Positions 16,205 through 54,405 of a stretch of 64,000 nucleotides of DNA are shown one piece after another. The translations under genes were made by a program, and so were the position numbers. A model generated the notes under the pieces. The model had not been told where the DNA came from and ran no database searches. It saw only the letters and a list, made by a program, of their open reading frames with translations. The stretch is from Lepidodermella squamata (taxonomy: Eukaryota; Animalia; Gastrotricha), in the NCBI GenBank assembly GCA_047495785.1, contig JBLDXI010000013.1, positions 372,001 through 436,000 of the forward strand, written 5' to 3'. Position 1 is the first letter of the stretch; every line of letters begins with the position of its first letter.

Positions 16205-17350
16205 TCAAAGATCTGATGTTGCATTGGCAGGTAAATTATTCCTGCTGCCATCATTATCAGCCGAATATGAAAAAGTGGGCGAAAAAACAGTCGCAGGTTG
16301 ATACATGTCGACCGGGGGCTTATCAGTAAATTGCACGAGATCATTGTCCAGGTTCATGGAACAATGCGACGGTTGGCTGTTCGCGTATAAATCTGCTTCA
16401 TTAGAAAAGCTTCTGCTGTTGTTCTTTGCCTCTTTATGACTGACTGATCCCAGCAAGCTAGCCATGAAGCTGTCACTTCTTATCGGACGGGCCGTAGGCA
16501 AATTTCGGGCAAACTTAGGCAAAAATTGAGGCCGATCAACGTGCGGATTCAGTAGAATGCTCGAATAATTCGACATCGGCAAGCAGTTCATGCGACGATG
16601 TCGTGGAACTGATGAAGATTTTATAGGATAACGAGACGAAGCGGTAGGGTTGGCCTGCCGATGAGAACTGTTATTGCGGTAACCTATGCCAAGAGAATTC
16701 CAAGGCGACGGACGGGTCTCAGGAAGACCTTTCCGCGGATATCTTGGTTGATCATCTCCATCAAACGTGCCGTAATTTAAATTTTCAGCTATCATGAAAT
16801 GTCCAACGTCCTCTCGGCTGCGAACACAGAAGCAATCGGCACATTTCCACAACACACCGATTAGAAGTGACAGTAATACGATCAGCAAGCAGCCGTAGCC
16901 AAAAATTTTCGACGGTGTTAAGTATCCCTCGACCAATAGAGACATCTGCAAATTAACAGGAGAAGTTAAGACATCTTACATCCTTATTCTCCCGTTATCA
17001 GGTTCTTTTCAAAAATGTAAAAATAAAAGAGTTTACATTAGTAGAAGATTCCACCATAAGACCATCCTCGCCTTTTGAGCCTTGCATTTTCAACGTCGGC
17101 CAGTATAGAGAAATGGCGCCGTCGACCACCGAAGGATGAAGACCGTTGAAGAAACTATCAGGTGGATGCACGCTCGGGGCATCTTTTGTTGAGTTGGTTT
17201 CGTAAGCCTGCCTCAAGGCTGATAACAGCTTCGCCAATACGGCCCGCTCGTCTTCTGATACTACAAGGCTATCCATATGAAAACAGAAAATGCACTAGTA
17301 ATATATCGCTCGCAAAAATTGCAAAAATTTACTGCCGCAATGTGCATCAT
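16205..17350 (-). CDS. Orphan single-pass membrane protein A (WKxxDxxC family); 5' end uncertain
   Basis: ORFs 16998-17276 and 16205-16951 join in phase 0 via intron 17036-16946. TM IFGYGCLLIVLLSLLIGVL is followed by WKCADCFC and a long disordered tail. The start at 17350 assumes a 38-nt intron and is tentative. Confidence 0.65.
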
Positions 17351-18343
17351 TTTTTAGATCTCTGAATTGATTTTTTTGAGATTGCGATCGATAGCTTAAC
17401 CGATCGGAAAATTGTAAGCAATATTCTCTGATATAATGACATGCAGATTTTTCGCACCATTGCAGATAAAAAATTACCATGTCTCAATGATGCGTCCTCA
17501 TTTCATTGATGGGGGGATTCAATATGATGCTGGTCAGCCGGCTAGGTGAGCATGTATCGTGTTTCGTAATTTCGCACAATTTTTACTGCACAGAGCTGTC
17601 AATCACAGCACGTGGTTTTTCCGCTCAGCGACTTGCCGTCGCACTACAGCCTGACAGTCACCTGTAAACTCTGATTGATCGCAATATAATTTTCTGCTTA
17701 TATAATTTTCCATAATTTTCGATTATTAGAGCTGTTTGTCGCACGTGAATTAGTGAATTATTGGGAGAACCGGTGCTTCGCCTGTGTTTTGCAGCATTCT
17801 CGCTCCGGCTGATAGACGTATCTGGCGGGTTTCGCATTATTCCATGTCGGTTTTTGTATAGCGGACTTTATGTACGTAATTAGTAATTACTGGCAAATGT
17901 CAGTTGAAGAACAAAAGGTGAGTTTTTCAGGAATAGAATTTTCAATAATCTATTTTACTGTACTGCGTTTCGTAGGATTCAGTGAATTTTTAGCAATTGG
18001 CCAAAATTAAGTTCCAAATTAAGTTTTCGATTCGTCTTCACCAAGGGTAGTTTTGCCAAGGCAGTCGATCAGCGACAAGTACATCCTTTACTTGGGTTCA
18101 CGGCTAGAGAAGAAATTTCTAATTTTTCAGCTGATAGAATCAAAGCTAATTTGTTGGCAAGGGCGGATTTGTTCTCCATAAACCGATTTTCCTCCCGCGC
18201 CTAAGAAACCAGAATTGTCTAGGAAATTTGCATTTTTCAATTAATTTGCATTTCTTTCCTCTTAGATTTTAGTTTATTTGATCATTGATTGACACCCAAA
18301 TTGCTTGTCTTTCGAGTTTTTTTGGCAGCAGAGCGGAAGAAAG

Positions 18344-20331
18344 ATGTCAGCCCCCAATGATGTAGGGCTGATATTTCGCATTCTGCTCACTGCAATACAT
18401 TTTTGTTTCAACTGGGCCCGAATAACTTCGCCTGCGCCGATCAACCGCTCAAAAAGAAATACACTACCCGTTGCACCCAAGCAGTTAAAGACGGCGGGTG
18501 ACAACCACAGGGCGACCTTAACCACGACGGCTGTAAATTTGACACCGGTCGGTTCTACGACGGACTACGACAGCTACAGCGGGGAAGAAGATTACGAGGA
18601 CGAAGAGGACGAGGCGAGCGGATCGGGGTCCATGGCTGCCGACCTCATTGATGATCCCACCGTAATGAGTGCCGTAAGTCATTTTTATCACTTGGCAATT
18701 CGATTTATTATATGCTGGCCTTTAAATATATAATATGGATTTGGTTCATTCTTTTGTATGTACTTCTTTTGTCCTTCTAGATGATGAACGAAACAGCGTA
18801 CGACCCCTACTATCAAACTACGGTTGATGATGTGAGTAAATATTTCTGGAGCTTATTTTGCTTGATGGATGCTTATCTACCTGTCAACCCGCAATTTTGT
18901 AGAATTTCTCAGATCTTGTTTTTTCAATGGCTGGTCATTATTGAAGGATCCTGGAATTCGAAATGACAGTTAGCCCCAGAAAGCCTCAAAGAGACATCAC
19001 ACAGTGGAAATTTGAGCGTTAAAGTGGGGGCCTAGGCTATTTACATGTTGGATTTGCTGAGGTCAAGCCGGAATGTTTCTGGTGGCTGGTGCTGTGGAAT
19101 ACATGTAAAAACATTGCGTAATTTAGATTTATAGCGCGATAGCAGTCCAAGTTACTTTTATACAAAAATAACTGTAGCTAGCTCGAATAGAGCAATTTTT
19201 TTAATTTTTCAATTTTCGTCATTTTTTTTAGATTTTTATCACATTTATTTTTTGGGAGAAATTAACCTGTATTTATCCTCGCCCATATTATACCGTTGCA
19301 TGCATTCGGACAGAGATGGAGGAGAGAGGAATTTTTAAGACGGCCACGAAGAAGTTATCCATGTAGAGTTCTTTATCGCATGCAATTTTCACTTAAACTA
19401 TTTTTCCAATATATTTTTCATCTTTCAGGATTCTGCTCACCCTGGCAGAATAATCATGCACGCCAGTTTGTTGATCGTCGGCTTCTCAATCATCATCGCC
19501 ATTTTCTTCAAGGTGGTCGACTACATATGCACGCAGCGCGAGGCGATAGCTTACCAAAACAGTGTCAAACGAAAAGCCGCCATTAGTAAATTCGTCAACC
19601 GAAATTCCCCATCTGTGAACAAGGCGCGGTATTCATCGCAAACGCGCGGGGAGATTTTGCGCAAAAATCGCCGCCGAGCCTACGACGCAGACCTGCAAAA
19701 AACCATCCATCGCCGAGGCGATAATGATCGGCTTATGAACAACCAAGAGGCAACACTGTCGCCGTCTTTTCTTAGCATTGATCAGTACCTGGGCGAAGCA
19801 AGTGCCGGTGGGCGACCAAGCATCGGTAGCGACGGTTTGACGCCGCCGCCGAGGATTGAACCGGTTTGGCACCGATTGCTGGCTACTTCGAACATTATGC
19901 GCCAAACTGCTGTCAGACTTGCGACAGACGACAAAACAGCACCGTTACGTCAGCACCCAGCATCGACAGAAGGTGGTATATCGCTAGCGCCGGCACCAGC
20001 CGAGGGCGATTCACCGTGGGAAATTCACAACGTTCGTCACGCGGATGGGTCATCAGAATGCGCGCCCTCTTCGTCCGAGAACGAACTGGGCTCTATTTTT
20101 AGCGGCAAGCTACATCGATGGGTGGGCACTTCGAGCCATCGGCAGTCGTTGAAGCAAAGCCACGAGGCCCCAGTTTTCATCCCTATCGATGATAGCAGGC
20201 CAATTATTAGCAGTAGTGGCGTCGCTTCCGGCAGTACGGAAACGTTGGAACCGGCTCTTTTACCGACTGCGAGCAACCATGAAAACTCGTCAAATTATAC
20301 GCCTCGAACGCCGAGGGTGACGAGACTTTAG
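18344..20331 (+). CDS. Orphan type I membrane protein B, proteoglycan-like (WKxxDxxC family); exons 18344-18673, 18781-18831, 19429-20331
   Basis: Signal-peptide-like start, RSKR furin site, Thr-rich stretch and acidic Ser-Gly cluster YSGEEDYEDEEDEASGSGS. Both introns are phase-0 GT-AG. TM ASLLIVGFSIIIAIF is followed by FKVVDYIC and a disordered tail ending VTRL. An extra internal exon is possible. Confidence 0.72.
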
Positions 20332-20775
20332 CGAACTAACATTAGGGCTTTCCAATTTATCACTAATTATGATATGAAATAAAAATCTCATTGCCGCTGA
20401 ACATGAGGAACACTTCATTTCCTTTCTTTACTCGGAATTTCTTAAAAGGCAAGTGGGCTGTGAACGGAAATTACGCTGCAGAAAACAAAGATGTTCACTT
20501 TTTGAACATTTCTTCTCCCTCGCGAGCAGTTTAAAACAACTTCCGGCCTTGTTTTCAGTAGAATGAAAAGCATGTTTGTCGAGAGAGGGCGGACGGCCAT
20601 TTCTCCGATCAACGCGCGACACGCAACGCGAAAATACTTTCGTCCCACTTTTTCGCTGTCAAACATATATACCTGCATGATTAGCTTGTTTATCGGAGAC
20701 TTCTCACGCAAAAATGCTTGAAGCGCGCTGCGCCTAGCCATCGCTCCGTTTATCACCGAATTCATTAGCGAAGAA

Positions 20776-21843
20776 ATGAATCGAATTATTATAGTCGCAT
20801 TATTTGCAGCGATAGGAGCGGCTAATGGAAGAGGCACGTGGCGTCCGAGCAACCAGCCAAGGGTAGTCAAGCTTCAACCGCGGTTCAACTCATCGCCTAG
20901 AATCGTAACTGTTTTCAGCAACAACAAAACGTTCACGTACCCTCCTCCGTGGGGTTATGACCTTAGCAATGGCCCTCAAAATTGGCAGAGCAAATATCCG
21001 AGCGGTTACGGGTTTGAACAATCGCCAGTAAATATCGTCGTTCGGAGCGCGTCTGTCGGTTACGATCGGCGTCTACTGCCGATCAAAGTCTTTTTCAACC
21101 GACCGATACAACATTACTTTATCAAAAATACCGGACATGGGTTCTCGGTCGAGCTCAGTAACTACAGCGACGCGTGTAAGTTCATGGGAAAACCTAGCCA
21201 ATCAGCTGTAAATTTTTATTTTTTAGTTGTTACCAACGGGCCGTTGACAGATCGTTATTTTCTCAATCGAATCGACTTTCATTGGGGAGTTGATGATGAA
21301 GCTGGAAGCGAACATCGCATTAACGGGCGCGCTTTCTCTGGCGAAATACAGCTAGTCCACTTCAACAAAGCTAGATACGCGACCTACGAACAAGCTTCGA
21401 AATTTGCCGACGGCCTTGCTATTGTTTCAGTTTTCCTAAAGGTAAGGAGTTTTAACAGGAAAAGTATAATATCTAACGAAACTTTTTCTCGGAAGGTTGG
21501 GGATGCGAAAAGCCGAGCGTTTGATACCATTGTAAGCATGTTGCAGCATATACCCAAAGTCGGGCAACAAGTGAAACCAACAGAGCTAATTTATCTAGCA
21601 GATTTAATTCCACGTGACACCGAACTGCACTACTGGATGTACTACGGCTCGCTAACTCAACCGCCGCTTACTGAAAGCGTTATTTGGATAGTGCTCCGCC
21701 AGCCGATCAGCATTCAGCCTCATCAGCTGCGTTACTTCCGCAATATTTGCCCATCAAATGTTCGCAACCCGCAGCCGCTCAACGACCGAGTTATTCGCGC
21801 TACTTTTCGCAAAGACGACGTCAAATCTTACAACCAACAATAG
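20776..21843 (+). CDS. Secreted alpha-carbonic anhydrase-related protein (two zinc-ligand His replaced)
   Basis: Signal peptide, WGY..GP..W, QSPVNI, NTGH, GSEH, DGLAIVSVFL, YYGSLTQPPLTESVIW and NVRNPQPLNDR. Zinc motifs read DFH (His94-equivalent is Asp) and EIQLVH (His119-equivalent is Gln). Two stop-free in-frame introns: 21176-21226 and 21442-21495. Confidence 0.93.
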   Translation: MNRIIIVALFAAIGAANGRGTWRPSNQPRVVKLQPRFNSSPRIVTVFSNNKTFTYPPPWGYDLSNGPQNWQSKYPSGYGFEQSPVNIVVRSASVGYDRRLLPIKVFFNRPIQHYFIKNTGHGFSVELSNYSDACKFMGKPSQSAVNFYFLVVTNGPLTDRYFLNRIDFHWGVDDEAGSEHRINGRAFSGEIQLVHFNKARYATYEQASKFADGLAIVSVFLKVRSFNRKSIISNETFSRKVGDAKSRAFDTIVSMLQHIPKVGQQVKPTELIYLADLIPRDTELHYWMYYGSLTQPPLTESVIWIVLRQPISIQPHQLRYFRNICPSNVRNPQPLNDRVIRATFRKDDVKSYNQQ

Positions 21844-21917
21844 TTTATTTTCTAGTAATCAATATAAGTCAATCATCATAAAATAAGTTCATAAAATAAA
21901 ATAAAATTCTTTGCTCA

Positions 21918-24504
21918 TCAGGATGTTGAATTCATCGTAGATGTTATGATGGAAACGGGCGTTGTCGTTTGGTTAATGATTGTTGAGTATGTCGTTATGT
22001 TTGGGTCTTGCAGCGGCTGGTAGTCAAGAACTGTCAGCCGCAGGGCGATGCTTATCATAAGAACGCCTAGGCAAATAAAAAATGCGAAAATTCGCTTCGT
22101 AATCAGCCAAATGATGCCGCGCCGGGTTAGGCCCCAAGCGTCCGACGGCGTCTCCATGTAGTCGCGAATCCGCTCGCCGACTTTATTCTTGTAAACCACC
22201 GTCCCGTCGTCGCTTTTGTTCTTGCCCTGGCCGCTCAGCAGGCCTGTTGTTTCGTCGGCCTCGACGCCGACTGAAGCCGCTGATCGGTACGAAGCTTCGG
22301 CAAACGACGACTCCATCTCATCGCCGCCGTTTCGCTCGTTCACTGCAATGTCGCGCGGCCGACCCAGGCTGTTTTCGCCTCTCGCCCCGGTTTGCGACAG
22401 CAACTGGTTGCGCACCATTGTCGAGCGTAAACTGTTCCGCCGACTGCGGCCTTTCGCTGCCGTTGGGTTATCGCTGAGGACAGCCCACGGCTTTCGGCGA
22501 CCGGTGAAGCTGGACAAAATTGCTTCGGCCTTCGATTGCGTTGTCTGCTCCACTTCATCATCTTCGTTGTCAATGTTACATCGCTCAGCAGCCTGAAAAG
22601 TTACCGTGAATTAGATGGGGAAAATCCAATTATGAAAGGCACTTACCAGCTCGGCTTGTTTCTTCCAGTTCGTGGTTAAAATCAAAATGAAATAAATGAC
22701 CGAGTTGATTGATAGAGCCCCGAAAAGCGCGTACCACAAGGCTGGAATTAGGAAAATATCTCGTAGAAAATACAGGTCGGAAAAACCGAGGCTTACGGTC
22801 AATAACTCCGAACTCGAGCATTAACGGTATGCCAACCGGTAGAGCTACGCAGTAGTAGCCGAAAATGTTGATGATGGAGCCGGCAAGTTGGCGACCACAG
22901 CCACGGACAATGCCGCCGCTGGTCGCTGAGATCGCGTCGGAAAACGCGTACAGTCCTAGAATCGGGAGCAAATTCGAGGTAATTTTAACGACTTCGGCAT
23001 CTTCCGTAAATGCGAGAGGGATGACAGTTCGAAGGGCGCCGAGGAAAACGCAAATGACTGTAGCCATAACTAATGTGACGAGTAGGCAAAGAATCGCCGA
23101 CTTCTTCGCCATTACATGGTCTCCACGTCCCAAATGCTGACCGATTCTGATGGACGAAGCAGACCCGAAGCCGATCGTTAACTATTTTCCGATTTTAAAT
23201 CCAATTCACTTTGCTAATTAGAATAAAAATATTATGTATTACCATGTCTGTTATTGTTTGGATCTGAAACAAAACAGATTGGGATGATTGCTGAATTACA
23301 CTGACGAGGCCGGAGAGAAAGACGCCGACTTCAATGGTCCACGATTCGACGCAAATCATGATTAGGCTAGGCAGAGCTAGCGTCATGAAGGCGCCCCATT
23401 CGAATAGTGAATGTCGCCCCCAGCCAGTCCATTCCCTGTCGTAAACTTTCCAGATCAGCACGTAGCCGATCGACATGCCTCCCATGACGTCGAATGAAAT
23501 CGCTTGTGCATATGCCGAACCTAATGTAGAAAATTCCATGTCCACGCGGTCAAACTTTTAACATCAAAATCGTCTACCGCCAAAGCCAAGATCGGCTTCA
23601 TTTATCAATATATAGTGCAGCAAAGCATTAAGGCCATTTCCGATGGCACCTATTATGATTGTCGGGTACAAGATATCCTGTGATACATCCAATCATTAGT
23701 AAGGCATAAATAGACTTTTCGTGCTCTTGTTCAAACCTGGTTTTGAAGATATTTTGATATCAAAATGAAGGCGAAGCAACCCTAGTAAAAATTATTGCAA
23801 TCACTCAGTTTTTAGGTGCCGTAAGCCTTACGGGAAGGCCGAACAAAAACTTGGTCAGGTATTCGGCAGCAACGCTATAATAATTACAAAAATTCAACCA
23901 CCCGGAAAAACAGCGAGCAAAAATTGCTTACTCAGAGACGTAAGGATCTTGGGCAATAAGTAGCAGGAAGGCGTGAGAATTTATCATAAAAGCCCAGCAA
24001 GGAAGGATCGAAAGACTGACGATTAGAGCGCCTATTAATAATTGATCTATAAAAATAGATGATGGGTTAGGTATAACGACTGACTTCTCTGCAGGTATAT
24101 CCCCATTTGGTAGAAATTTCCCGAGCCGTAAGTTTGCGAGAAAAACGTATCACATGCAGCTGTGAGGCCCGTAACGATGCTGATACCGCCAATATTTATC
24201 AACTAAACAATTGGGATAGAAATATTGCCAAAATTATGATTGGAATCGGAATAATAATAATACCGATCCTGCTATCGAGACCCCGTCTAGAATTGTTGTT
24301 CCCAGGTGTCCGCAAAAAACCAGGGAAATCGGGGTCAAAAGGTATGACCACAGCGAGGCCATAATCTATTATTAAAAATCAACAATCATTTGACTTCAGA
24401 GCTAGATTGTAACATGACAATACCAGTGGCCAGGCCACGTGAAGGATTTCTTTCAACTCTTGTTTGACATCCGGGGTCCAATGCTTCGTTATAAATTCGA
24501 ACAT
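21918..24504 (-). CDS. Multidrug and toxin extrusion (MATE, SLC47A-like) transporter, many small exons
   Basis: ELKEILHVAWPL start, LALPSLIMICVESW, GIVRGCGRQ..G..INIFGYY.VALPVG and NWKKQAEL. An extra C-terminal TM helix (RIFAFFICLGVLMISIALRLTV) matches the animal MATE1 architecture. Confidence 0.92.
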
Positions 24505-25145
24505 CCACGAAAGTCTCGTATTTTGTTATTCCTTGTTTGAAATTGAAATTTATAGCGCTGAATACTTCAAATAACTGTGATAGTGTTAGTGGTACATTGC
24601 AACAACCTCAAATTTTTCTTATATAACCGAGAAACAAAAATGCGTTGATGTGCTGCAAAAATGACGAAAAGAATGGACGGTTGGGCCTAATCAAATACCC
24701 GGAAATAATTTTGTCACAGAGCGCAAGACAAGATAACCTTTTATCTCGCAACTTGCCATACAGCATTTAGCCTATATTTGATAAGAAAAGTGCAGCAAGG
24801 CGAGTCACGTGGTAGTCGTGAATTCATTTTATTGTACTTTTTCACTCTTAAGAATGACAATTGTCAAAGCAGTTTCAAATATAGCCTCGCCAAGAGTAAC
24901 GAGTAAATAGATGTAACATTTGTCTCTGGCCTGGTCAGTCAAGAAAAATCTTTAGATAATTGAGATCAACAGAGGTGGCAAGACACGTGCTATCATATAA
25001 GTATATAATAATCTAAATCCTTCAAATTTGCGTCATCGGAAATTGTTTTGTCGTCAAAGTTTATCAAAATGAGATTTAATCACATGATAATGGTATCTAA
25101 AACTAAAATTGAGATCAAGCTTCACAATAGATGTCGACAATACAG

Positions 25146-26421
25146 TTAAATTACAGGCGGCTGCTCTGAGTTTTTGAGCTGCATATCTCGCATGCTAAGA
25201 AACGCTCGACACAGCGCGGCGGCGTCAACTTCGCTCAACGGTTGATCGAGTTGAATTTGCTTCTCAGGCAGCTTTTGCTCGAGTTCGATTACAGCAGCTT
25301 TCGATTGAACCTTCATCTTGCCTGCTGATTTACTGCTTTGATGAGCCGACTTTTCGACCGGCGATGCATTTTTCGCGTAAATCGGGGCCGCATTATGGGT
25401 AAGAAGGCGGCGGTACAAGCAAGCAGCATCGAGAAATGGGAGATTGTTAAGAAGCTGAAGGTTCAGAGCAGCTTCACGGCCACTCACCAAACCAGCTGGT
25501 CTAAACAGAAAAATATATAAAAATTGATTTTTTAGACGTTTAATTTCTAGCTTTTACCCCATAGACAGAGCTTTCATAACCACATCGTCCTGTTCGTTAA
25601 AGTTGCGTCCATTCTTTTCGTTATTCTGCATTTGACTCTGGACAACAGCCATGCCACTGAGAGCAGGAGATGGCGCCTGGTCGTTGCCGGCATCAACTTT
25701 TCGCCGCTTGCTGCTCGACGACGGCCGCTTCTCCGAAACAGCAGGCGACGCGATGCGAATGCTAGGCGGCCGAACCTGCAGCATGCCACTGCTGTCCGGG
25801 CTGCTCGCGGCGCAACACCCACTGTCGCCACTTGCCGCGTCTTCGATTGAAGATCGCGAGTGCTCCTCAGAATCGCCCTTCAGTAGCAGCAAATTTCCAC
25901 TTGTAATCGTTTGAAACAGCTCTTTCTCCGGATGCTTGCAACTGGCTCGCTCTCTCTTTCGCCATTTCGATCGCCGATTCTGGAACCATCTATCAACAGT
26001 CGCGAATTAAACTAAAACGAAGCAATTTACGCGATAAAACTAACATTTGAATTTTCTCCTCCGAAATCGACGTTTTAAGTGACAGTTGCTCGCGCGTGAA
26101 GACATCAGGATAATGCGTCTGGCGAAAAATTTTCTCCATTTCCGAGATTTGGTCCGAGCTGAACGTAGTCCTCGGTCGGCGTCGTTTAACTTGGTCTCCT
26201 GAAGAGCTGGCGGGGTTGACAGATTGAGGGCTCGGTGGCTGCGAAGCGTCCTTCTCAACCACGGCCAGTTTAATGCTGTCTAAATTCTCGGTTTTCGCCT
26301 CGCCGCTAAAATCGGCGGAAGATCGGCGTCGCTTCTCGTCGATTCGCAGGTCAATGATTGCATCTTCCTCGCAATCGCCGTCGACGTCGACGATGATACT
26401 TGTCTCGTCGTCGTAACTCAT
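25146..26421 (-). CDS. PRD-class Q50 homeodomain transcription factor (Arx/Drgx/Hbn-like, divergent); exons 26421-26045, 25989-25558, 25500-25146
   Basis: Spliced homeodomain [60 protein letters not shown]. No paired domain or clear OAR motif seen. Confidence 0.92.
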
Positions 26422-30221: not shown

Positions 30222-30263
30222 AGTCCGGTTTAGAGCGGTCCGGGTTATACAACTTTCACTGTA
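30222..30263 (-). mobile_element. Possible terminal inverted repeat of a pogo/Tc1-mariner-type MITE
   Basis: Minus strand reads TA|CAGTGAAAGTTGTATAACCCGGACCGCTCTAAACCGGAC: a TA target site, a CAGT terminus and a repeated CCGGAC submotif. No partner repeat was found by eye. Confidence 0.3.
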
Positions 30264-30426: not shown

Positions 30427-31570
30427 TCAAGTCTTCCACGAAGCTCGCACCGTTTGCCCCTCGGCTAAGGGCATGACTGATCTGCAATTCTCTCGCATAT
30501 AAATGGCATTGAAGCCGTTTACTTCAGCAGGTGCCTCTCGATAGAGATTTCTCAGGATGCCCAGCTGATGCGATGAAATATCTATAGGGTTAGCAATGAT
30601 TATCCAGCGAGCATCGCTAAGTTGCCTTTCCTCCGTGGTTGCATTTATTGTACCTTTGTAGGTCCAGTACCGATCACTATCCATTGGTAGCAATCGAGCT
30701 ACGTCGACATTATCGGATAAAATTATCCGCTCACCAGGTATTTTGATGTAGTCAAAATTGTCTAGAATTTTTTGCAGTTCTCTATTCTGTTGACCGAGTT
30801 TGAGAAATATCGCAACTGCCGCAAGGCCATCCGGTTGGCGAAGCGCCTCCGAAAAAGTGATATAATCTTTATTGTAGTGGAGTAATTGTATCTAAACATA
30901 AGAGATTATTTGCTGATGGAGATTCAAATGATAGTCGCTTACCTCGCCGGCAAAATGAAAACTTCTTACTGTGTGTTCAGAACTCCATTTGAAAAATATT
31001 TTCGAGAGGGCGAACGTGTTAGATAGTGGGCCGAAACTAATGGCTGTGCAAATAAAACAATCGTCAGAAAAATTCTTTATATAGGCGAAATAACTAACTG
31101 TTTTCGGCAAGATCATCTGGCAATTCGCCGTAAACATTTTGACCATCATTGCTGATAAGCAAATTTTCAACCGCATGGTCATACTTAATTTCAAAAGCCG
31201 GATATATGGGGCCGTCGAAGATAACCCAGGGCTGCCTGTCATCAATATCGATTGGTGACGGTTTCAGCTCGCGCAATGCTTCCGTTTCTTCGATCGATGA
31301 ATCGTGGCGTGTTTCCCTTAGGTCGATTGCGTTGATGATGATCGATTGGTGTGGAGAATTTTCACCAGATTTCAGCTCGCCGTTAGATGGCATATCGCTT
31401 TGTATAGCATGAGACGCCGAGCGCGTCACGTGCGACTCTTGCTTATGGCCCGACACGGGGGTCAAGTCGTAGTAATCAACAACCATGACAAGCCACAAAA
31501 ATGATGCCAAAAATATACACACAAATAGATGAAACCTGACGCCTAAGCGCTTCGACAGGCGGCTTTTCAT
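30427..31570 (-). CDS. Type II membrane-anchored, acatalytic carbonic anhydrase-related protein, 3 exons
   Basis: N-terminal TM FHLFVCIFLASFLWLVMVV, a stem region, then PSPIDID, GPL, SEHT and PDGLAAVAIFLK. Zinc motifs read FFK and EIQLLH, so all three His are lost. GSLTTPP is replaced by GTINATT. Confidence 0.88.
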
Positions 31571-42600: not shown

Positions 42601-42622
42601 AGAGGAGAGAGAGAGAGAGAGA
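42601..42622. repeat. (GA)n microsatellite in the 3' UTR of the MARF1-like gene
   Basis: agaggagagagagagagagaga read directly. Confidence 0.8.
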
Positions 42623-42656
42623 GTGATATAAAATTCATCGCAGTAAAAAAGTGTCG

Positions 42657-45600
42657 TTAAAATGCGTTGAGTTCCGAAGTAGATTGCTCGTACGATGATG
42701 AGTAGTAGTCGACAGCAGACGGGTCGACGTTCTCGTCGTCCTGCTCGAGCAACAGGTAGCCGCCCAGGCGCAGCAGGAGGGACGATTTCGGTGGCGATTT
42801 CGGCGGCGTAGCCATGAGCGCGCCGCCGATGGTGTTGTTGCGTTGCAGCAGCGGCGCAGAGGCGCGGCGTTTGTGCGCCGACGACGGCGGCACGCCGAGC
42901 AGCATGTCGGCTGGCATGCGGCGGCCGTCGAGACGCTCGAAGTCTTCGTCATCGTCGGCGTCCTTCTTCGATGAAGCATCTCCGCTGTGGGACATGATGG
43001 CGATGTTGAGCATGGACGACGATCCGCGAGTGCCGGTGATGAAAGACATGACCTCGGGCGACACGGACTGGCGGAAGAGGTTGCGCAGTTTGACGATAGA
43101 CGCCGGCGACGCCGAGTCGACCACCGACAGCATTTGCAGCCACGCCGGGCCGCTGTTTGGATCGGAGGTTGTGAGCACCTCGAGAACGTCCTCGACGCTG
43201 GCGCCCCACTCGTCGACGAGGCGGCTGACAGGCGAAGCGAAGCCAAGACCGTCGCCGGTCGCGTTGCCACCCACCGCCATTAGCGCTTGCCGAATCGAAG
43301 AGGCAGCGAGGCCGAGCGGGGTGAGTCCGATGGCGGAAGTGCTGTCACAAGACAGAATAGGCAGCGGGCCTTGGCACAACTCAATCAGCGACTCCAGCAA
43401 GAGCGGGCCGGCACCAGGTGTCGGGAACAACCGCGAGTACAGCAGCGAAAGTTCGTCGAGTGAGAAGAACAGCGTGCCGGCTGAGTGCAGGCACATGGCA
43501 AGCCACGACAAGCGGCGCAGGTGTGCTCCCGACTTGTCATGCCGGTCTGGCCGAGCGACTTCAACGACCGAAGGTGTCACGGTCGATACCTAGGCAAATT
43601 AAAATTGTTGAATAATATTGTCAAGATTGAAATTGCAGCAATTACTTGAAAGGAAAAGGGTAGCTTGCGGATCACGTCTTCACGCTTGCCGGCTGATGAG
43701 AAGCGACGGCAGCTGACAAACGCGTCGCTGGCGAATTGGTCGAGATCAAAGCGAACGGGATCGTCGGGGGATGTGCCCGGCGGTACCTGGGTCAGGAGAT
43801 CGGTAATAGCGCTTAAACGGCGGCGCTTGGCGCAGCGTTGTGAGTTGCAAGTGATCGACACGTCAGGCGTGACCGACGTGCTGGCCTCCGCAGACGGGGC
43901 GACGCGGAACGAAAACTGTTCAGCTAGCACCCATTGAGGCTGGAAGGTGAAGCCGTCGACGAACGCGAATAGTCCGAACGGGTGCTTGCCAGCACGCTCG
44001 TCCTCCTCGGCCATGCGCAACAGGTCGGCGATGCACAGCCACTGGCGACCGTCGATGTCAGCCGTCGACGAGCAACAGCCGGGGAGGGGCGGCACGGGCA
44101 GAGCAACTGACAGCGCCTGAACAGCGTGAATGCGCCGGTCAACGGCGTGGCGCCACAGCGCTGCGTAACCGGGCAGGGTCAAGCCGACGAGACGCGGGCT
44201 GCCGTCGTCGTACTCGGATCCGAGCAGGTGCAACCAGCCGAGACGTTCCAGCTCGTCAAGATCCTCAACAATGCCGTCGAAATGCGCCCGCTCCAGGCAG
44301 ACGGATCGGCAGGCGCCACTGCTAAGCGTCGGCTCGTCGACCTCGGCGACGAACATCTGAAAGACGGTCACGAAGTCGCCCGGCCAAGAGCTGTCGAGCC
44401 AAAAGTTCGACGCGTAAGCCCACTTCTCACAGTCGAGAGCGAGTGTCATGTGCCACAACGGCGCCGAGTTGCCAGCGGCGGAGTGACTCGCCTTCAGGCG
44501 CATTATCGTCACGCAAGGATGCATGCGCAGGTAAAGCTCCATGGGCGCGCCTTGAAGCTGAATGGCGAGAAAGCCGTTCCAGTCGGCGAGCGCAACAGGC
44601 AAGTCAAGCTGTGCTGTCTTGTTGAAGCAGACTCGGTCGCAGCCGGTCTTGCGCAGGTCGTTGATGATGGCCATGACGTGGAAAAGCACGCTGATGGGGC
44701 CGAGTTCGGCTGGCGGGCGATACGAGCCTCGCGCCGCCGCAACGTCGGTGATGAGTTGGCGAAAGCGGTTGACGGCTGTCTGACGGCCGATCGGCGCACT
44801 GGTCGCCGGTGACAGCGCCAGGTCGAGAAACATCTCACCATGAGTCTTGATCAGATTGATGCCCGGCGTGTCGGCAGGGGCTGGCGGCGCGGCTCCAGCG
44901 CTGGGCTGGTCGTCTTCAGTTTCCGACAACAGTGCTCGCCGCCTGAATAAGAAAAATCAGTAAAGCATTATCTATAAATAATTTTCCGTGAAATAGCAAC
45001 CTGGTGTCTTCAGCCTCACGTTCGGGCGTGTCGATGCGGGCGGCGGCTGAGGCGCGACGGCGGCCGACGATCGCCCGTGCGCAACCGGTCGACAAGTTGT
45101 TCGAATTGTTCGAATTCGAAAGCGCCGGCGTCATGTTGAACGACGACGCGTGGGACTTGAGCGACGTGTCCGGTGGCGTGGGCGATGCTGCGCCGGAGCA
45201 GTAGGCCGTGTCGGACGAGCGTGGCGTGATCATTTGGAACAACGATGGCGGCGTGGAGATTGCCGACACTTCGAAATCTACGCATAAAAACAAATGTTTT
45301 GCTCATGAAGATGGCGCACCTAGACCTATAGGTTTACATTGCTTTTTACCATCGTCGGGCGTAATCTCAACCGTTGGAATCGATGCCTGTGGTTGGCCAC
45401 TGCCGATGGTGCCGATCTGCGCCAGTGAGCTCTGTGCCGACGCGCTCGAGTGGCCCAGATTTGCTGAGTTGTTCAGACTTGCTAGAGTTGTCGATTGGCG
45501 TTGATACTGATGAGATTGCCGACGGTTGTGGTTGTAGCTATCAGGCGGCGTTTGAACCACTTCTAGCTGATGGGTCGGCTGGTATTGCTGCTGTTGCTGA

Positions 45601-46576
45601 AACGGGGGCACTGCCTTGGGCATACAGCCTCCACCGCCACCTCCCCTGTTACCACTGTTTTGTTGCTTCGCGAGCTGGTCGCGAAGTTGGCGAAGAATGT
45701 CGTCGCGTTGCGTAGGTGTCAACTCGGCGTCATCGTAGATCCACACCTTGCGGTAGCCCACCTTAACCTCGTTCGACTTGGATTTCGCCAACCGCACCTG
45801 CTCGTCGGTGGCTACCGAGAGTACGGCGTATCGGTTTCGACCGGTTGGGTCGGCTTTGTCGTGGTGGCATTCTCCATCGATTATCTACAACAACAACGAC
45901 AACAGTTAATTTCACGACTTCATGAGAGGATGTTTTAATTTTGTTTTCTAAATTAAAATATTTTTCTATGTTTGTCTTTACTAAACAGAACTATTTCTGG
46001 AAATTAAGGACTTATAGTTAATTGTACTTTTCTACGTATTTTCAACTATCAAGATTAAGACTAATTAATTTAATTAAGCAAATCAAGCTATTAAGGTGGA
46101 ATAAGCCGAAGGAGATATTTTATTAGAAAATTACCTCGATGCCGTGTTTTTCGAGCTGTTTTCGCAAAACAGGCACGTACTCTGCCTGTTTCATGGCGTA
46201 GTCAAGGTTAGCAATGAAAATTCTTGGCATGCTGCCTAGAGGCTGGTTCACTGCTGGTGTTGAAAGCGAGCGGTTTAGAGTCGGCGATGTTGTGCCCAAG
46301 TTGTTGGCCATTCGCCGGTTCGAGCTGCCGTTGTTTTGGCTGCCGCTTTGGCCATTTGCGGCCATTTGCATTGAGATCGAATTGTTGGCGCTGTTATCCG
46401 CGATCATGTACGAATGTCCTTCATTGCCCTGTGTCAGTGAAGCTTCATAAGACGTCATCTGGATTAATTGCTGTGATTCTAAATTAAAAAAAATAGGTTA
46501 GGTCGATTTTGAAGTTTGAGAAATGGGAATCTTTACCAGATTCTCGGAACGATGGTGGTCGGGAAGAACGACGCAT
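42657..46576 (-). CDS. 1151-aa RRM plus LOTUS/OST-HTH-like protein (MARF1/limkain-b1-like, no NYN domain); exons 46576-46537, 46478-46135, 45884-45320, 45277-45001, 44942-43646, 43589-42657
   Basis: Six exons sum to 3456 nt in one open frame. RIFIANLDYAMKQAEYVPVLRKQLEKHG ... YAVLSVATDEQVRLAKSKSNEVKVGYRKVWI resembles the second RRM of MARF1. Segments such as GDFVTVFQMFV..HFDGIVEDLDEL..LHLL..LVGLT and SLDELSLLYSRLF..LLESLIEL..IGLT resemble LOTUS repeats. The gene model is firm; the family call is by eye. Confidence 0.65.
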
Positions 46577-48117
46577 TTGAATGAACACTGAACGAAGGGC
46601 GCCTCGATTGCGTGGGTTGGCCGGCGCTCACTACTTCTTTACTGATGTTTGCAGAGTCGAATTATATCAAATTCAAGTTAGAAAATTGGAGACACAAAAA
46701 TAAGTAAGTAAAGAGTTCGAAGTAAAGTTACGAAGTGAGCGTACTTCCTGACGAAGCCATATTTCTAGTGTTAAAAAATCCGATGTGGTCGGCCTTCTGA
46801 AAGTTAAGCAGCTTTTAATTGTTTTTAAATCTCGCGCCTCCGTTCTGCTACCAGGCAGCACGCCAGTTGTTGGCGCGCGTGCGGCCAGTGACAAACGCTC
46901 GTGCCGTTTCGCAACAACTCGACATCCGGTGGTCGTCTTGCTAAACTTGCCATGGACTCCACCGCTTTCTATTATAAAACACTAAACCCAGATGGTTGTA
47001 ATCTTTATTGACTAGAAATAAGACAAAAAATCCAATAATGGCTGCTGTCTAGAACTGTTCCGGAACCGCCATTTCTCTCCTTCTAACCCAATTAAAAGTC
47101 ACAGCAGAATCATTTCATTTGCCTAACATTTGATTCCCTTTTTGAATATTTGAGACAACCCAAGAAAAGGTACTCAATTGACATTTCGTTTTGATAAAAA
47201 AGCAACAGTTGGTTCCTGTCTACTGTTACGCAAAACTCCTATTTATTATTTGATCCACGAAAAACGTTGATTCTTTTTCTCTTCTCATTTAAATTCGAAA
47301 TTCGGCCTCTCTGCTGAACAGAATAATTCAGGTTGGAAATTCTGCTAGAAAATCATCTGCCTGTAACCTGTCACCTGTTGGCCGAAAGTTGAACCTTCGG
47401 ATGACAACACGGATGAAAGCGAACGGTATATAAACGACCTAGGCACAATAATAGCTGGCCGTTTCGAAGTTATTTCTGCAATTTCGTATTTGTGGCATTT
47501 CAGTTTAACTTTTCGAGCTTGGCAAAAGCTATATCATCGGTCCATTCGCTTTTATCATGAGTTTCAGAGTGAACGGCATAGTGGTTCTAATATAGGTATG
47601 CAGTGGGACAAAGAGTCATGATCTGACGGGATCGGCATCTCGATAGCTTGATCCGTTGCTATCAGTTGCATGATAGTTTTCTGCTCCCCCCAAGAAAGAA
47701 TTTCCTCCTGCAAGCCGATATTTCCAGCTTTCTTTTCCAACTTTAAACGATTCACCAATAAACATAGTATGAATCAACCGATAACTAAAGGACATAATAC
47801 TTCGCCCTATCTCGCGTAAAATACATGCAACAATTTACTTGAGAGTTTCGTCCGCAACCTTTCGATGTGACCCTCGGAAGTTGAAAAAAATCAGGCATTC
47901 TCAAATTCTGGTTTTATTGACGCATTACGAAACAGTAAGATCAATGTCGTCCATGGACCACTCAATTGCATTCAACAGAGGATGTATACAAGCAGACTGC
48001 ATGAAAGCACGTCGTCCTCTCGATTTGTTTCTTTGTTTTTTTTCGACAGAACAGGCAACGACAAAAATTAAATACTACATAAGTTCCAACTTGGATAGTA
48101 ACAACAAATTTTTACGA

Positions 48118-49354
48118 TCAATCACGGCCTAGCATATGACCGCGGCCCCATTGATGGCCGCCCCGCTGTTGAGCAGCTGCCTCATCTTGACGGTAGCGGT
48201 AGGCCGGTGGTACACCAAAACCAGCAACGCCGCCTTGGCGATTGGGTAGATACCGCAAGAGAATCGATGGTGTTTGCAGGAAATCGGTACCGCCGTAGTC
48301 GACCGGGTAACGGTACTTCAAGAAATAGTAGACATGGCCGACCAGGATGCCGACGATCTCGACAAATCCACTAGATACAACAAGATCGAATGTAGTTGGT
48401 TGTAAAATGGACTCTGTTGAGACTGGGAGAGATGGTTGCGCATGAGAAGAAGAGAAGGCAGATAACAGAGGATCTGGAGGCGTGTCATCCCGCTCAAAGC
48501 GAGGTAAAGGCATTTCTACCTGAATCCGCGAGTGCCTGCAAAAGCGACGCGTGTCGCCAAAACGAGCGGCAAAGCAAGTTAATAACTCAAGCAAGTTCAA
48601 AGATAATGCCAACAGGGTCAGAGTGTCAAGTCACTGAAGGGAAGTGCGCACGAAGGATCTCAAACAACAACTTACCCGCCACGCAGGATCAAATTGAAAG
48701 CCAGCAGAATCCAAGGCAAGTACATAGCTTTGAATTGGGTGCCAAACCAAAACTGCACTATCGTCTCCTTGTTGACTTGACACCAAATGTAGAGCACGGA
48801 ATATACAAGAGGCTCCATCAAGAGCTAAAACGAAGACATTGAAATGAATCGTCTGGGTTAAATCTTTGTAATAACTTACCGGAATTGAGGCGAAAACTGA
48901 TATAACGAGCAGAACGACCCAATTGACCAGCAGCAAAAACAAGAAGTCGGCTCGACGGCCATCAAACATACCTGAATCAAAATTACTGTTAAGTTAATGC
49001 CTCAATCGCAGCAACAAAATTAATACCAGTCTCGAGTCGAGTTGAGTACGAATATAAAAAATACAGCGTCATCAAATAATGAAAACCGGTCATTGGCGTG
49101 ATTGGATAGTAGAAAACGGCTGTAATTGGTCTCCATATCTATGTAATAGGTAAGATAGCAAACGGCAATGCTCACAAATGCTGTAAAAATCAACGCACCT
49201 GAAAGTACCGGATGACCAGGTCCCAGCTCAACAGCATGTAGGCCGCACTGACCAATCCAAACCTTCCCAACAGAGGCAAAACCAGCGAGCCGGTGAACCA
49301 ATAGCGGGATATCAGTGGTATCGACCGATACCAGTCTCCCAAGTCGTTCGCCAT
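48118..49354 (-). CDS. DERL1: Derlin-1 (ERAD rhomboid pseudoprotease), 5 exons
   Basis: MANDLGDWYRSIPLISRYWF, YSTRLET, FDGRRADFLF, GILVGHVYYFL.YRYP.DYGG.DFLQTP and C-terminal SHP box HQWGRGHMLG. Confidence 0.95.
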
Positions 49355-50719
49355 GCGTCTTTCAAAATCACTCTAAGCCAATAATAAAAATTCAGTTAAA
49401 ACAAAGGTAACGGAAGGTTTCAGCCTCGATTGCAGTGCCCCTTTTCACCCTGAGAAAAGCTCCAATGTGTGGTATTGAGCATATGCAATTTACGGCGGCA
49501 GCATTTCGCTAACGGCTAGCGGCGTGGTATAAAGTTTGATGTGACGGTGACTATTTCACCTAAACGCTAAACGAAACTAAGTCCACAGTCCATATAGGCT
49601 AGGTTCTTATTTTCGCAGATCGCCTATGAAAAGAGCCAGAGACCAAAGGAAACATAGGTGGTGTGTGGTGTCTGAATTGAATGACGGGGAAAATCCTGGA
49701 CTCTTCTGCTGACGGCTGCTGACTCATGTAACCCTGCTGACTTTTTTTTACATGGTATGGAATGAACGCCACGGACAATTGAAACTAACTTCCAAGTTTT
49801 AAACGCTCGATGAATGTTTCTCAGTTCTCAGAGATGAACCGCGTTAAAGGGTCAAAGCTGCGAGAAAACGACTCGGTTTGAAACCGCAACGTCAGCATTA
49901 AAATTAAAATTCGGTGAACATTGTTTCTTGGTCATTTTTAAATACTAAATTTAATACTAAAACTAATAATTTATATTAATTTTATAAGATAAAAACTATT
50001 ATTGTCAAATGTTAACCGCATGTTTTTGCAATATGCGAAAGTGCGAATGAAACCCAAAAGTCAACCGTCGCAATTGAAGTGTGCTAGCGATTTTTGCCCT
50101 AACTCTATCTTCCCAGCCGCTTGAAAAGGCAACAGCTGACATACTCATTATTGCACAACCATGTATAAACAACCATGCAATTTTTGAATGATCGCGAAGA
50201 TAGAGATGCGGCCGAAATCGTTTGCCAATTTTCCCCCAATCGCGTACCACTCTCGCCGAGATCTCATGTGATCTTATTCACGACAAACCTACCAACTTGT
50301 TTACTTCGGGGATTGTTGAGCAAGATAAAAAAAACCAGAATGCCCTCAGAACTCATGCGTCTCGATATTCTTGCCTTGCCCTGAGAGGCAAGTCCAAGTC
50401 AGGTCCACACTGTTCTTATCAATTAACCATGTTCCGAAGTTCCTTTATATAGCTGAAACATTTTGATATAATATCTTGAATTGACGAATTTCGAACGTTC
50501 GAATGGGTGGATGGAAGATTAACAGTATTTTGATTGCAAGAATTACTTCTGAAGCTTTCTCGCATGAACCTCGCGTTGGATATTCTTCACAAACTAAATG
50601 AAAGCTAGTGTGGACGTACACAATTTATTTTCTCTCCCTTTCTCTAAAAGGATGAGTTTCCTCCATAAAACACATAAAAAAGATGCCAATATTGGGTATT
50701 TCATGCGATGATTCAATCT

Positions 50720-51711
50720 TCAGGTTGCAATGTCTTGATTACTGGCGTTGACGGCAGCTTTGTCTGATGCATTGCTTGGTGTTCTTGTGGGTTGCTTTTC
50801 TCCGATAGTCCTCAGGGCTAAATTACGAGTCGATATCGCTAAAGCTGTAATTGATGATGAATCTCGAATGTCTTGATATGCTGCAGAATCTTCGTCTGCA
50901 AAAGACGACTGAGGCACGAGATGTTTCGGCCGTCTCACTTCAAAACTTCGCTGAGGAGTATCAGCAAACAATTTGCCTTTGGCTGCTTGAGTGAGATGAT
51001 GGGAAAGGTCGTTTTTCAGCGCAGGCGTTGGTTGCTTTCCAGCAACTGAGCTCAGCTGCTGCTCATTCGTTGATACCGTTACAGTTGCAGCTGCGGCAAC
51101 AGCGGCTTTGGTCTCGTTGTCCAGACTTTTCTGAGAGCTTGATTTTTTATGCTTGCTCTTGCTTTTCTTGATTATTGCCTCCACGGCGTTTTCGTGGTAT
51201 TTAGTTTTCAAATATTCGTAGAGAAAGCGCTGACGAAGGACGTAGTCTTCATAATATTCGCGATATTTTGTCTCTGATCGGCGTTCTTTGTGGTTAAACA
51301 GAACCATAGCACCAATAGCAGCTGCATAGGCCAATAATACTACCAAAACGTACATGAGAGCATCAACCTAAGAAGAAATTGAAGATTCACAATTTAATCA
51401 ACTGACATTTTATAGCCCCGAACCTGCGGTGGCTGAACCGGTTTAGCGGGTAACGTCGGTGTCACGAAAAATCCGGGAAACGAATCATTGCCATCGAATT
51501 GGTATATCGGTGACAGCGTTGTCGTACGATAACTTTTTCCTTTGGAAATTTTATAGCCGCCAGTCCTGTTGGCTGGTTTTTCAAGCGATGGATTGCCGTA
51601 GCTAACTGGAGTAGGGCGTGGCCGCTTAGTTGAGGCTAAGATTATGTCGATGACTCGTGACAGGTTCACTAGGTACGTGTAAAGCTCCTGATCGATTGCA
51701 CCTGTCTCCAT
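50720..51711 (-). CDS. Single-pass membrane glycoprotein D, KCNE/MiRP-like; exons 51711-51424 and 51367-50720 (5' end may extend further)
   Basis: 56-nt phase-0 intron. The N-terminal region carries N-glycosylation sequons NLS, NRT and NDS. TM DALMYVLVVLLAYAAAIGAMVLF is followed by NHKERRSETKYREYYEDYV. Confidence 0.65.
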
Positions 51712-52938
51712 TGTCTCTTTTACTATGATAGAAACGTCTTGAGAAATCGGGGTATTCGCTAGCTACTAATCAGTGGGCAGAATTTGATGTGAGAAGAAAA
51801 TTGTATTGCAGTGAATTTGATAAAATAAAGCGGAAATTGATACGATGGGCTGCTCGTTCTTTCAGCCTTTCTAGTTCATTCCATTAGTCGGCGCGACAAA
51901 ATAGTTCAGGCGCAAAAATAATATTTAGCACTGAAAGAAGTGTCACCTGTACTGGGACTTATGGCAGCTTTTCCAATGCCGAATAGAGGCAATCGATAAA
52001 TCAGGTTGCTTTTGAATGCTGAAAATTAACGGCGCGTTCTCTGTGCCGCTTGTTTATACACTTTTTCATCTATATTCCACTATAGTTAATGCTTTCAGTC
52101 ATTTCACTATTTGTTCGCCTATCGCAAACATTTCAATAAAATGCAAATTGAATGATCGAACATAATAAAGCAGTGTTATTGGTATATTACGAATATCTGG
52201 TTTAAACCGCGGCCGGCAGTTGAAGTGACATGATGTATGCCTTGAAGGTTAAAACAGGTGATCAATTTCGTGGAGTTCTATCTATTGATTTTACGATGAG
52301 AGTTTTCAGCACCCAAATCGATGATCACAAGATTTATTCTGCCGTTGATGAGTGAAGGGAGCTCGAGCTAAATCCTAAGGCTTAGCGCCCTGCAGTAAAA
52401 AACTGAAACTTAATAATGACTGAAAGAATAGGTGGAAGCAAATAGAGCCTTTTCCAATATAACATGACATGGAGGTGGATGTGATCTATTGTATCACATT
52501 TTACTGATATCGTTCACTACATATAATAAACTCTTTATTCCAACATGAATTGCACTAAAGCGCGAAATCTCGACATAATTCTTCTGCCAGGGTACTTGTG
52601 ACTAGATTCACCCAGCCATTGCCGTCCAGTATAGCTGCGCTTTGCCTCGCCTTATTTGTCCTGGAATAATAAATTGCTTTTATCAACACCCGTCCTTTTC
52701 GCGCCCAGAATAACGCCTCAAAGAGACATCATTCAAGCCGATAGATTCGCAAATTGGCTGCTGCCGTATGGAGCAATTTGACAATAATAACTCATTTACC
52801 GGTAATTATTTTAGTGTTTATGCGGCTATAACGATCAATATTTAATAATAGCTAAATGCCTTGATAAATTATTTGCCTTTACTTTTTCGATAAAAATAAC
52901 TTTGCTAAATTTGCGATATTGGCGGTATTGCCAGAATT

Positions 52939-54405
52939 ATGAACAAAGCTAAAAAGGGATCGGCCCTCGAAGTGCAGATGACTAGCACTAAGAGGACAAC
53001 AACTGAAAAACCTAGGAAAGGCGGCAAAAATAATAAAAGCTCGACGCCTAAGACCAAGTATTCTTCTTCAATTATTGCAGCTCACGATGACGATGGCCAC
53101 GAGGCTACGACAAATTTGGTGCCAACGGACAGCTCAACTTTAAAAGACCATACCCATCAGCACATTCAAGGCGGCTCGTTTTGTCAGAACGGCCTCGATG
53201 CGTCTGGGTTGCGATGCGCCGAAAAGGTTCGTTTTTTATCTCATAATAGAAAACCCGAAAGTAGCCTAGTAAACGACCAGCTATCTGGAACCAGGTTCAA
53301 TAAACGCACCCGAGAATTGGTGATGGTTAGTAGAGGTTTGATTAAAGATTTTGCTTAATGATATTTTCAGAACTCGAGAGGCGTCGGCATGTACATCGGC
53401 GACATGATCATGGTTGCATCTGTGGCTGTTGTTATAATATCTATCGCCGCTGCCTTATTCTGGAAAATCAGCGATTTCGTGTGCACTCTGCATCAAGGCA
53501 AGCATGAATTCCAATTGAAAAGCTATTTGAAGGTCAGGCGACGGAAAAATCAACCGGGTCCGACCAAACCAGACAGCAAACCATCGAATATTCTGTCTTG
53601 GCTTGACACTGAAAAGCGCCGTTTTGATCTATCTGGCTTGGACGATGTCTTCATGAAGTCGCCGCCTCCACCGGCTTCAAGTGCCGACGATGAGTTGGCG
53701 CGGCTTCGCAACACCGTCAAAGCCACCTCGAGCCAACGTGTTTACTGGGCATCACCGCCGCTACAAGCAACGTCCTCCGTTCCTCCCGTGATTAGCAACG
53801 ACTCAATCGGCAGCAACAGCTCGTCGACATGGGGGGAAGACGATATGTCCGAAAACTCGCTAGCAGCGCGTCCACTGTCGATACACAAGCCTAACGCCTC
53901 AAATCAAGAATTGCAGAGTGCCGGCGACGCAAGTCGGTCGATTACGCTCGACTCTTTCGGACCGTCATCTGTTCAGCACCAGCAGTACCGTAGATCTAGC
54001 CGCTTCAGCAGTTCGACGGGAGCCACTAGTCTGACGTCAGCGGCTACAACTGATCAGCAGTCAATGGCCAAGGCCTCCCCGTTATTGATTGCAGCCTCAA
54101 AATTGCTATTAGCCGAACGGCCTTCAACCTCGACCTTGCCCGTTCGACCGCCGACAGCTACGAGCACGTCGAGTGGTACTGCTACCCTCATGCTATCCGC
54201 CGCTTCTCAGGCCTCCTCAGCTGCTGACATTCTGCTAGGCCCTACTGCGTCGAGCTTACGTTCCAAGTCACAGAGACAGGACGTACGGACGCTTCGAACG
54301 GTGCCCAGTGCCGTAGAGATGCTCTCCTCGTCGCAAAGAAGCAGCACGTCTGGTTACACGCCCGATTCGTGTTTCAAGATATACAATTCTGGAAAGATGT
54401 TATAG
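52939..54405 (+). CDS. Orphan single-pass membrane protein C (WKxxDxxC family); 5' end uncertain
   Basis: ORFs 52939-53358 and 53389-54405 join through the phase-0 intron 53326-53370, probably also an in-frame intron 53227-53280. Thr/Lys-rich N-terminal region, TM ASVAVVIISIAAALF then WKISDFVC, and a Ser-rich tail. Confidence 0.7.

Follow-up and report, generated by a model that had tools for sequence, protein, structure and literature searches.

Several described families of single-pass membrane proteins come close in design to the genes considered here. TMIE (transmembrane inner ear protein) is a single-pass auxiliary subunit of the TMC-1/2 channels and binds TMC-1 by its helix and a juxtamembrane elbow; in C. 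elegans, the Cys at the membrane boundary of TMIE is palmitoylated, and a conserved Arg pair in the elbow, R49/R52, bonds to TMC-1 (PMC9605866). The adaptors LAT, LIME1, PAG, and NTAL combine a single pass and a juxtamembrane Cys with a cytosolic tail that is long and disordered and is presumed to bear short docking motifs. Syndecans have a type I layout and are best conserved in their membrane helix, and FXYD and KCNE are small families in which the membrane helix and a short flanking motif are conserved and bind the partner. Here, we describe three genes, A, B, and C, in a 64,000-nucleotide (nt) stretch of genomic DNA from the gastrotrich Lepidodermella squamata (contig JBLDXI010000013.1, positions 372,001 to 436,000; hereafter, the window, with positions counted from its first letter). 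These genes are a real family under selection, not a chance resemblance, and one face of a membrane helix is what selection has kept. To our knowledge, a single genome has been published for the Gastrotricha, and the genes particular to their lineage are unexplored.

An earlier note on this DNA had claimed that three otherwise unalignable genes align without gaps over 34 residues comprising a membrane segment and a juxtamembrane motif. Translation at these positions reproduces the three quoted peptides letter for letter, and the pattern scan and the alignment place them in A at 16823..16924 on the minus strand (YLTPSK...LWKCADCFCV), in B at 19432..19533 on the plus strand (SAHPGR...FFKVVDYICT), and in C at 53386..53487 on the plus strand (GMYIGD...FWKISDFVCT). 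The motif [WF]K..D[FYC].C is confined to these segments in a six-frame translation of the window. Without gaps, the BLOSUM62 scores are 51 for A/B, 33 for A/C, and 71 for B/C. In the shuffled controls, residues were permuted inside the N-flank, the membrane core, and the C-flank separately, which preserves the membrane-like character; these controls average −8 to −16, so that the pairwise z values are 4.0–6.6, and the sum-of-pairs z is 9.0, with 0 of 20,000 shuffles scoring as high. The earlier note had named a score no better than that of shuffled membrane segments as grounds for giving up the family; the alignment beats such zone-shuffled controls. Among 231 other hydrophobic windows from long open frames in the 64 kb, the best reaches 48 and lies in a non-gene frame, and the others reach 18 at most. 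After the motif, the tails of A, B, and C are unalignable (best BLASTP E 1.4 to 3.6), and the apparent motifs in a MAFFT alignment of the tails have therefore been set aside.

A hidden Markov model (HMM) of the three segments was scored against 1.84 billion (1.84e9) representative proteins, with E < 0.001 as the threshold for listing. Three matches lie below it, and two of them are true relatives: P0001 (E 3e-10) is B-like and reads ...DSTHIEGSDPGPVIMTSCTFIVVFSIMISAFFKIVDFICTYHEATGYQ..., while P0002 (E 1e-7) is C-like and reads ...GLYIGDYIGLASLAVILISMIAAVFWKVSDYFLSKH...; the third, P0003, is a repeat protein and a spurious match. P0002 also has the motif found in the N-terminal part of C, H-x-HQH..GSFC..G-x-D..G..C, with the same spacing. 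Both relatives come from metagenome contigs in ENA that belong to one related animal, and both occur in one sample. B and P0001 are 49% identical across 57 residues, the remainder being unalignable, and only about 50 residues of C and P0002 align, at 45% identity. In a second species, B and C thus have one orthologue each, conserved in the core of about 50 residues alone, which agrees with the idea of old paralogues put forward in the earlier note. A second HMM was built on A, B, C, P0001, and P0002 (alignment A3) and run in six frames over 110 kb, that is, the window and the metagenome loci L001–L005. The five members score 75–90 bits, and the next best sequence scores 7.9; all five, each at 75 bits or above, have the mid-helix Ser and, eight residues on, [WF]-K-x-x-D-[FYC]. 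This search revealed no fourth member in the window and no further member in L001–L005, including an A-like gene beside P0001, whose locus (L001) has no A-like neighbour and different surroundings (trypsins, DCX, PLAT). The hydrophobic open reading frames (ORFs) at 31094–31570, 21918–22553, and 50720–51355 were considered as members and rejected by their alignment scores and by the family HMM.

No named family has been found for these proteins. Pfam gave no match up to E 10 for any piece of A, B, and C or for P0001 or P0002, and the family profiles, run against all PDB chains up to the same E, brought up only a CydS-like bacterial peptide, eIF3A, and SecE, none of them convincing. A word-index search with the last exon of C, in a database without the proteins of this genome, gave no match and was dominated by low-complexity words. 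The sole match in the JGI metagenome contigs (L006) covers 16 residues of a bacterial-looking contig, falls outside the relevant ORFs, and is spurious. Along with the search of 1.84 billion proteins and the neighbours found by a protein language model, these results uphold the description of the family as undescribed. As far as the databases reach, it is known from this genome and one related animal, and it looks restricted to this lineage rather than metazoan-wide, to judge from these sequence searches.

The relationship between C and P0002 extends to their surroundings. P0002 is flanked by a minus-strand gene for a single-pass protein and by a minus-strand AP-2 gene, in the same order as C (loci L002/L003). 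In the window, the AP-2 transcription factor gene lies downstream of C at 56441..57919 on the minus strand, and a gene with the same domain (PF03299) adjoins P0002; the two AP-2 proteins are 64% identical. Their DNA-binding part is 80–86% identical to those of molluscs, echinoderms, and vertebrates alike, and AP-2 is therefore uninformative as to the placement of the animal. The second anchor, at 50720..51355 on the minus strand, encodes a single-pass membrane protein and is head-to-head with C; it is 40% identical overall to its counterpart at L003:3648-4382 (minus strand) and identical at 56 of 60 positions in the membrane-proximal core. Given these common neighbours on both sides, P0002 is a syntenic counterpart and orthologue of C, and the animal that carries it is a fairly distant relative. 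The core of this second anchor, itself an orphan, reads YVLVVLLAYAAAIGAMVLFN..ERRSETKYREYYEDYVLRQ.F.YEYLKTKYH and is far better conserved between the two species than the A/B/C family. Pfam gave no match for this protein, a word search returned the query alone, and the family HMM does not match it. Since it is head-to-head with C in both species, a common promoter or a common function is possible.

What has been conserved in the family is protein rather than DNA. Codon identity is 53–78% at second positions and 16–44% at third positions, and identical residues use different codons in about half of the cases; this pattern points to a constraint on the protein and not to a DNA repeat or to gene conversion. 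All five sequences share one mid-membrane Ser, the Lys, and the Asp, and no other residue is invariant. Over 28 columns, the periodicity of conservation peaks at 100 degrees per residue exactly, with a moment of 0.74 and a permutation p of 0.0025, and the conserved positions (I4, S/C8, V11-12, S15, A19, [WF]22-K23, D26, and C29) follow one another in steps of 3–4. By this spacing, the stripe is one face of a predicted alpha-helix that crosses the bilayer and extends for at least seven further residues. From single sequences, AlphaFold2 gives an unbroken helix for residues 5–58 of the last exon of B, with a block-mean predicted local distance difference test (pLDDT) score of 94–98 at 11–50 and values below 50 at 167–300; in P0002, the helix is unbroken from residue 69 to 128. 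Outside the helix, pLDDT is below 50 in most of both models. The tails, of 180–310 residues, are mostly disordered, as the earlier note had it, and so are the ectodomains, which are unalignable as well. The helix face is under purifying selection.

Chance has to be considered here because membrane segments have low complexity and tend to resemble one another and because the motif was defined post hoc: the segments could be similar hydrophobic stretches in unrelated orphan ORFs, or the ORFs might not be genes. This explanation is refuted, and the probability left to it is negligible, given the shuffle controls, the distance between the members and everything below 8 bits in the HMM search, the orthologues and the synteny at C, and the codon-position pattern, together with spliced contigs from a sequencing run, X1, which was treated as a transcriptome in view of its exon-only cover and its GT..AG joints and is not recorded as RNA.

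The explanation that we favour, with a probability of about one half, is that A, B, and C are three paralogues of a lineage-restricted single-pass family acting as adaptor or auxiliary subunits. Each protein would consist of a variable N-terminal part, probably outside the cell, a single membrane helix, and a cytosolic tail that evolves fast and is largely disordered. The sole constrained module is the predicted continuous alpha-helix of about 45 residues formed by the membrane span and its cytosolic extension. The stripe face may pack side-on against another membrane protein, with the Lys/Asp pair making polar contacts at the boundary of the inner leaflet, and the Cys, where present, may be acylated. 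Short docking motifs, free to change, would be the contribution of the tails, and of these the C-terminal L, I, or V could be a PDZ-type ligand. The earlier note had likened the family to auxiliary subunits of channels or receptors and to membrane adaptors, and this is supported in essentials, although the likeness itself is something that we infer.

TMIE is a documented precedent for a single-pass subunit that docks on its channel by the membrane helix, the elbow, and the palmitoylated Cys at the boundary (PMC9605866). Like the new family, it has one membrane helix followed directly by a conserved juxtamembrane segment and a cytosolic helix, and then a charged, flexible tail; it also has a Cys at the cytosolic boundary, where four of the five family sequences have one and P0002 has a Leu. 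Unlike TMIE, the family has a much longer ectodomain and a much longer tail, a helix that is predicted to be continuous, without an elbow, and mostly no signal peptide. Could these proteins then be highly divergent members of a described single-pass family, TMIE foremost, masked by fast evolution? TMIE clusters are among the nearest language-model neighbours of two queries (0.78 for B and 0.83 for the P0002 core), TMIE being the nearest neighbour with a name, and its general layout is the same, with a boundary Cys. However, such scores carry weight from 0.9 upward, and few features are shared: the Pfam TMIE model (PF16038) matches none of eight pieces at E up to 10, the profiles A2 and A3 show no similarity to the solved TMIE chain when run against all PDB chains up to the same E, and the Arg pair is absent, a K-x-x-D standing in its place within the [WF]K-x-x-D-[FYC]-x-[CL] of all five family sequences. 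A hidden membership of this kind seems very improbable. A narrower version of the favoured explanation, in which the lineage-specific subunits use the helix face to dock with a multi-pass channel, transporter, or receptor that is itself conserved, is doubtful; if it were true, these proteins would be counterparts, or relatives diverged beyond recognition, of TMIE-type subunits, and the three paralogues would tune one core complex in different cells via interchangeable tails.

The conserved face could instead serve the proteins' own assembly. They would then be self-associating, perhaps palmitoylated adaptors of the LAT/LIME/PAG type, in which the face mediates homo- or hetero-oligomerisation of the paralogues as well as their partitioning into membrane domains, and in which the disordered tails recruit cytosolic proteins. 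The architecture, with a membrane helix, a juxtamembrane Cys, and a long disordered tail, is that of such adaptors; A has three Cys (CADCFC), the small residues of the stripe, [GAS][SC]...S...[GAS], are typical of helix–helix packing, LIME1 is a weak language-model neighbour (0.81), and the three paralogues lie inside 38 kb. Nevertheless, LAT, LIME1, PAG, and NTAL have a very short ectodomain, a CxxC, and many tyrosine motifs, whereas in the family the N-terminal part before the membrane helix is 88–134 residues long instead of a few, each protein other than A has one such Cys or none (P0002 being without the motif Cys), the CxxC is found in A alone, and there are just 0–2 Y-x-x-hydrophobic motifs in each tail. 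Moreover, the Pfam models of LAT and LIME1 found no match at E up to 10. Adaptors of this type are a possible explanation but not a probable one. The length of 88–134 residues also contradicts the short N-terminal region described in the earlier note.

The resemblance to syndecans lies in the type I layout, in the membrane helix as the best-conserved part, and in the acidic ectodomain of B. At 18560–18630 on the plus strand, this ectodomain has an acidic cluster, Ser-Gly repeats, and a Tyr beside acidic residues (DYDSYSGEEDYEDEEDEASGSGS), which, as a sequence, resembles sites of glycosaminoglycan attachment and of tyrosine sulfation; the Ser-Gly cluster is in B alone and not in A, C, P0001, or P0002. 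However, the syndecan model PF01034 gave no match, there is no C1 (RMKKKDEGSY) or C2 (EFYA) motif in the family, and the family tails are ten times longer than those of syndecans. The FXYD and KCNE proteins are much shorter than A, B, and C and show no sequence match to them, and the FXYD motif is on the extracellular side.

Alternatively, the helix could be a trafficking or retention signal, for the ciliary or the apical domain, for example, that sorting machinery reads transiently, rather than a surface for stable docking, with the real functions lying in the variable ectodomains and cytosolic parts. This would agree with the conservation of a short linear module alone, both ends being free to evolve, and an aromatic-Lys near an acylated Cys resembles known juxtamembrane targeting signals. 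However, the stripe spans the full bilayer, including the invariant mid-membrane Ser, which exceeds the usual cytosolic sorting motifs, and such a signal is an unlikely explanation.

In the favoured reading, with adaptor or auxiliary subunits docking by their helix, the tail would lie inside the cell. In four of the five sequences, the 30-residue flank on the C side carries more positive charge than the one on the N side (+8, +6, +9, and +4; A is at 0), which favours an N-terminus outside and a tail inside, and we infer this topology from the sequences. As for the tails, the C-termini are SDL, TRL, KML, SSI, and EMV, all five ending in L, I, or V; three of the five would fit a class I PDZ ligand, which is suggestive at best, as these sequences represent only three independent lineages.

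Several observations weigh against this reading. The flank charges of A are neutral, a signal peptide is plausible in B alone, the other four sequences being without one despite the 80–130 residues before the helix, and C and P0005 are basic at their far N-termini; the scarcity of signal peptides and the basic N-termini make the N-out topology insecure. Were the topology reversed, the S/T/P-rich tails with their N-x-S/T sites could be extracellular and mucin-like. The motif Cys, six residues past the aromatic-Lys, is present in four of the five sequences and is a Leu in P0002, so palmitoylation cannot be a universal constraint; of the juxtamembrane K/D/C on which the earlier note had based its idea of constraint, the Lys and the Asp hold in all five sequences and the Cys does not. 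A single conserved helix face would fit self-association or a sorting signal equally well. Finally, the conservation statistics come from five sequences in three lineages, and X1 is only presumed to be RNA, on the strength of its cover and joints.

A and B are expressed and spliced, as seen in the X1 contigs. Gene A is on the minus strand. Its exon 1 (17037..17276, ATG at 17276) is an ORF of 80 codons with a GT donor at its end and encodes the N-terminal part, which is probably extracellular and has no signal peptide. The intron (16946..17036, 91 nt, phase 0, GTAAAC...TTTGCAG) is crossed by an X1 contig that connects position 17037 with the ATG at position 16945, and this loose end of X1 continues with ATGTCTCTATTGG, the first letters of the last exon of A. 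This last exon (16205..16945, an ORF of 246 codons plus stop, with X1 contigs over 15997–17178) encodes the membrane helix and then a 213-residue tail ending in ...TSDL. Another X1 loose end, at 17110, was considered as an extra upstream exon of A and turned out to be an inverted-contig artefact that matches 16896–16925; many "opposite strands" joints occur in the X1 contigs at 15800–21700, and these are artefacts of the same kind.

Gene B is on the plus strand and begins with an ORF of 110 codons as exon 1 (18344..18673), which encodes the possible signal peptide and the acidic ectodomain with the Ser-Gly cluster. A mini-exon of 17 codons follows (18781..18831; MMNETAYDPYYQTTVDD), with both ends in phase 0, and then the last exon (19429..20331, an ORF of 300 codons plus stop), which encodes the membrane helix and a 273-residue tail ending in ...VTRL. 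The X1 joints 18673>18781 and 18831>19429, both GT..AG, define the two introns (18674–18780 and 18832–19428), and all junctions are in phase 0. A and B are head-to-head, about 1.07 kb apart, an arrangement that suggests an inverted local duplication with a common upstream region.

Gene C, also on the plus strand, has an exon 1 of 96 codons (52939..53226), placed by its ORF, the donor AAG|GTTCGT, and the spacing in P0002; it encodes a basic, T/S-rich N-terminus and the motif HxHQH..GSFC..G.D..G..C. The last exon (53371..54405, 344 codons plus stop), placed by its ORF and the splice-site sequence, encodes the membrane helix, followed by an S/T/P-rich tail of 313 residues that ends in ...GKML. 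The phase-0 intron of 144 nt between them, with its donor at 53226 and its acceptor at 53370 (TTTTCAG), is a prediction that follows from an in-frame stop, from these splice sites, and from the alignment with the intron-less orthologue P0002. An alternative donor at 53325 would give an intron of 45 nt; the spacing in P0002 favours 53226 instead. Of the sampled words, X1 holds 21% for the C locus and 26% for the A/B stretch. The predicted lengths are 326 residues for A, 427 for B, and 440 for C. Unpaired acceptor-like sites stand 4 to 20 nt on the 5' side of the three ATG codons: ACTAG about 20 nt upstream in A (17294–17298, minus strand), TTTTTTTGGCAG about 15 nt upstream in B (18317–18328, plus strand), and TTGCCAG 4 nt upstream in C (52935–52938, plus strand).

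A phase-0 intron shortly before the membrane segment had been proposed as a common feature of the three genes; X1 contigs confirm it for A and B, and for C it is predicted. Its position is not fixed, being 7–13 residues ahead of the membrane segment and in no single alignment column. The comparison of introns across the HMM matches, which the earlier note had recommended, also speaks against a common origin mark: the ORFs of both orthologues, P0001 and P0002, are uninterrupted past the intron point and lack an acceptor at the corresponding site, so that the phase-0 intron does not serve as a signature of the family. Either it was lost twice in the relative, or it was gained in parallel in this genome. 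Near B, the carbonic anhydrase gene at 20776–21843 is a single open frame and yet has a pair of in-frame mini-introns, 51 and 54 nt long (21176–21226 and 21439–21492), as revealed by GT..AG joints in X1; long ORFs of this genome can thus conceal introns. An exact look-up of the carbonic anhydrase ORF found no entry.

For now, A, B, and C are a new orphan family of a familiar kind in a little-studied phylum, and the finding touches no long-standing question. They nevertheless make a clean case of a family defined solely by one face of a membrane helix, which has been kept across two species while the ectodomains and cytoplasmic parts of the orthologues have diverged past alignment. Such families usually escape both annotation and domain libraries, and they often prove to be subunits of larger membrane complexes. 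A partner, if one were found, would show how a conserved complex gains lineage-specific accessory subunits.

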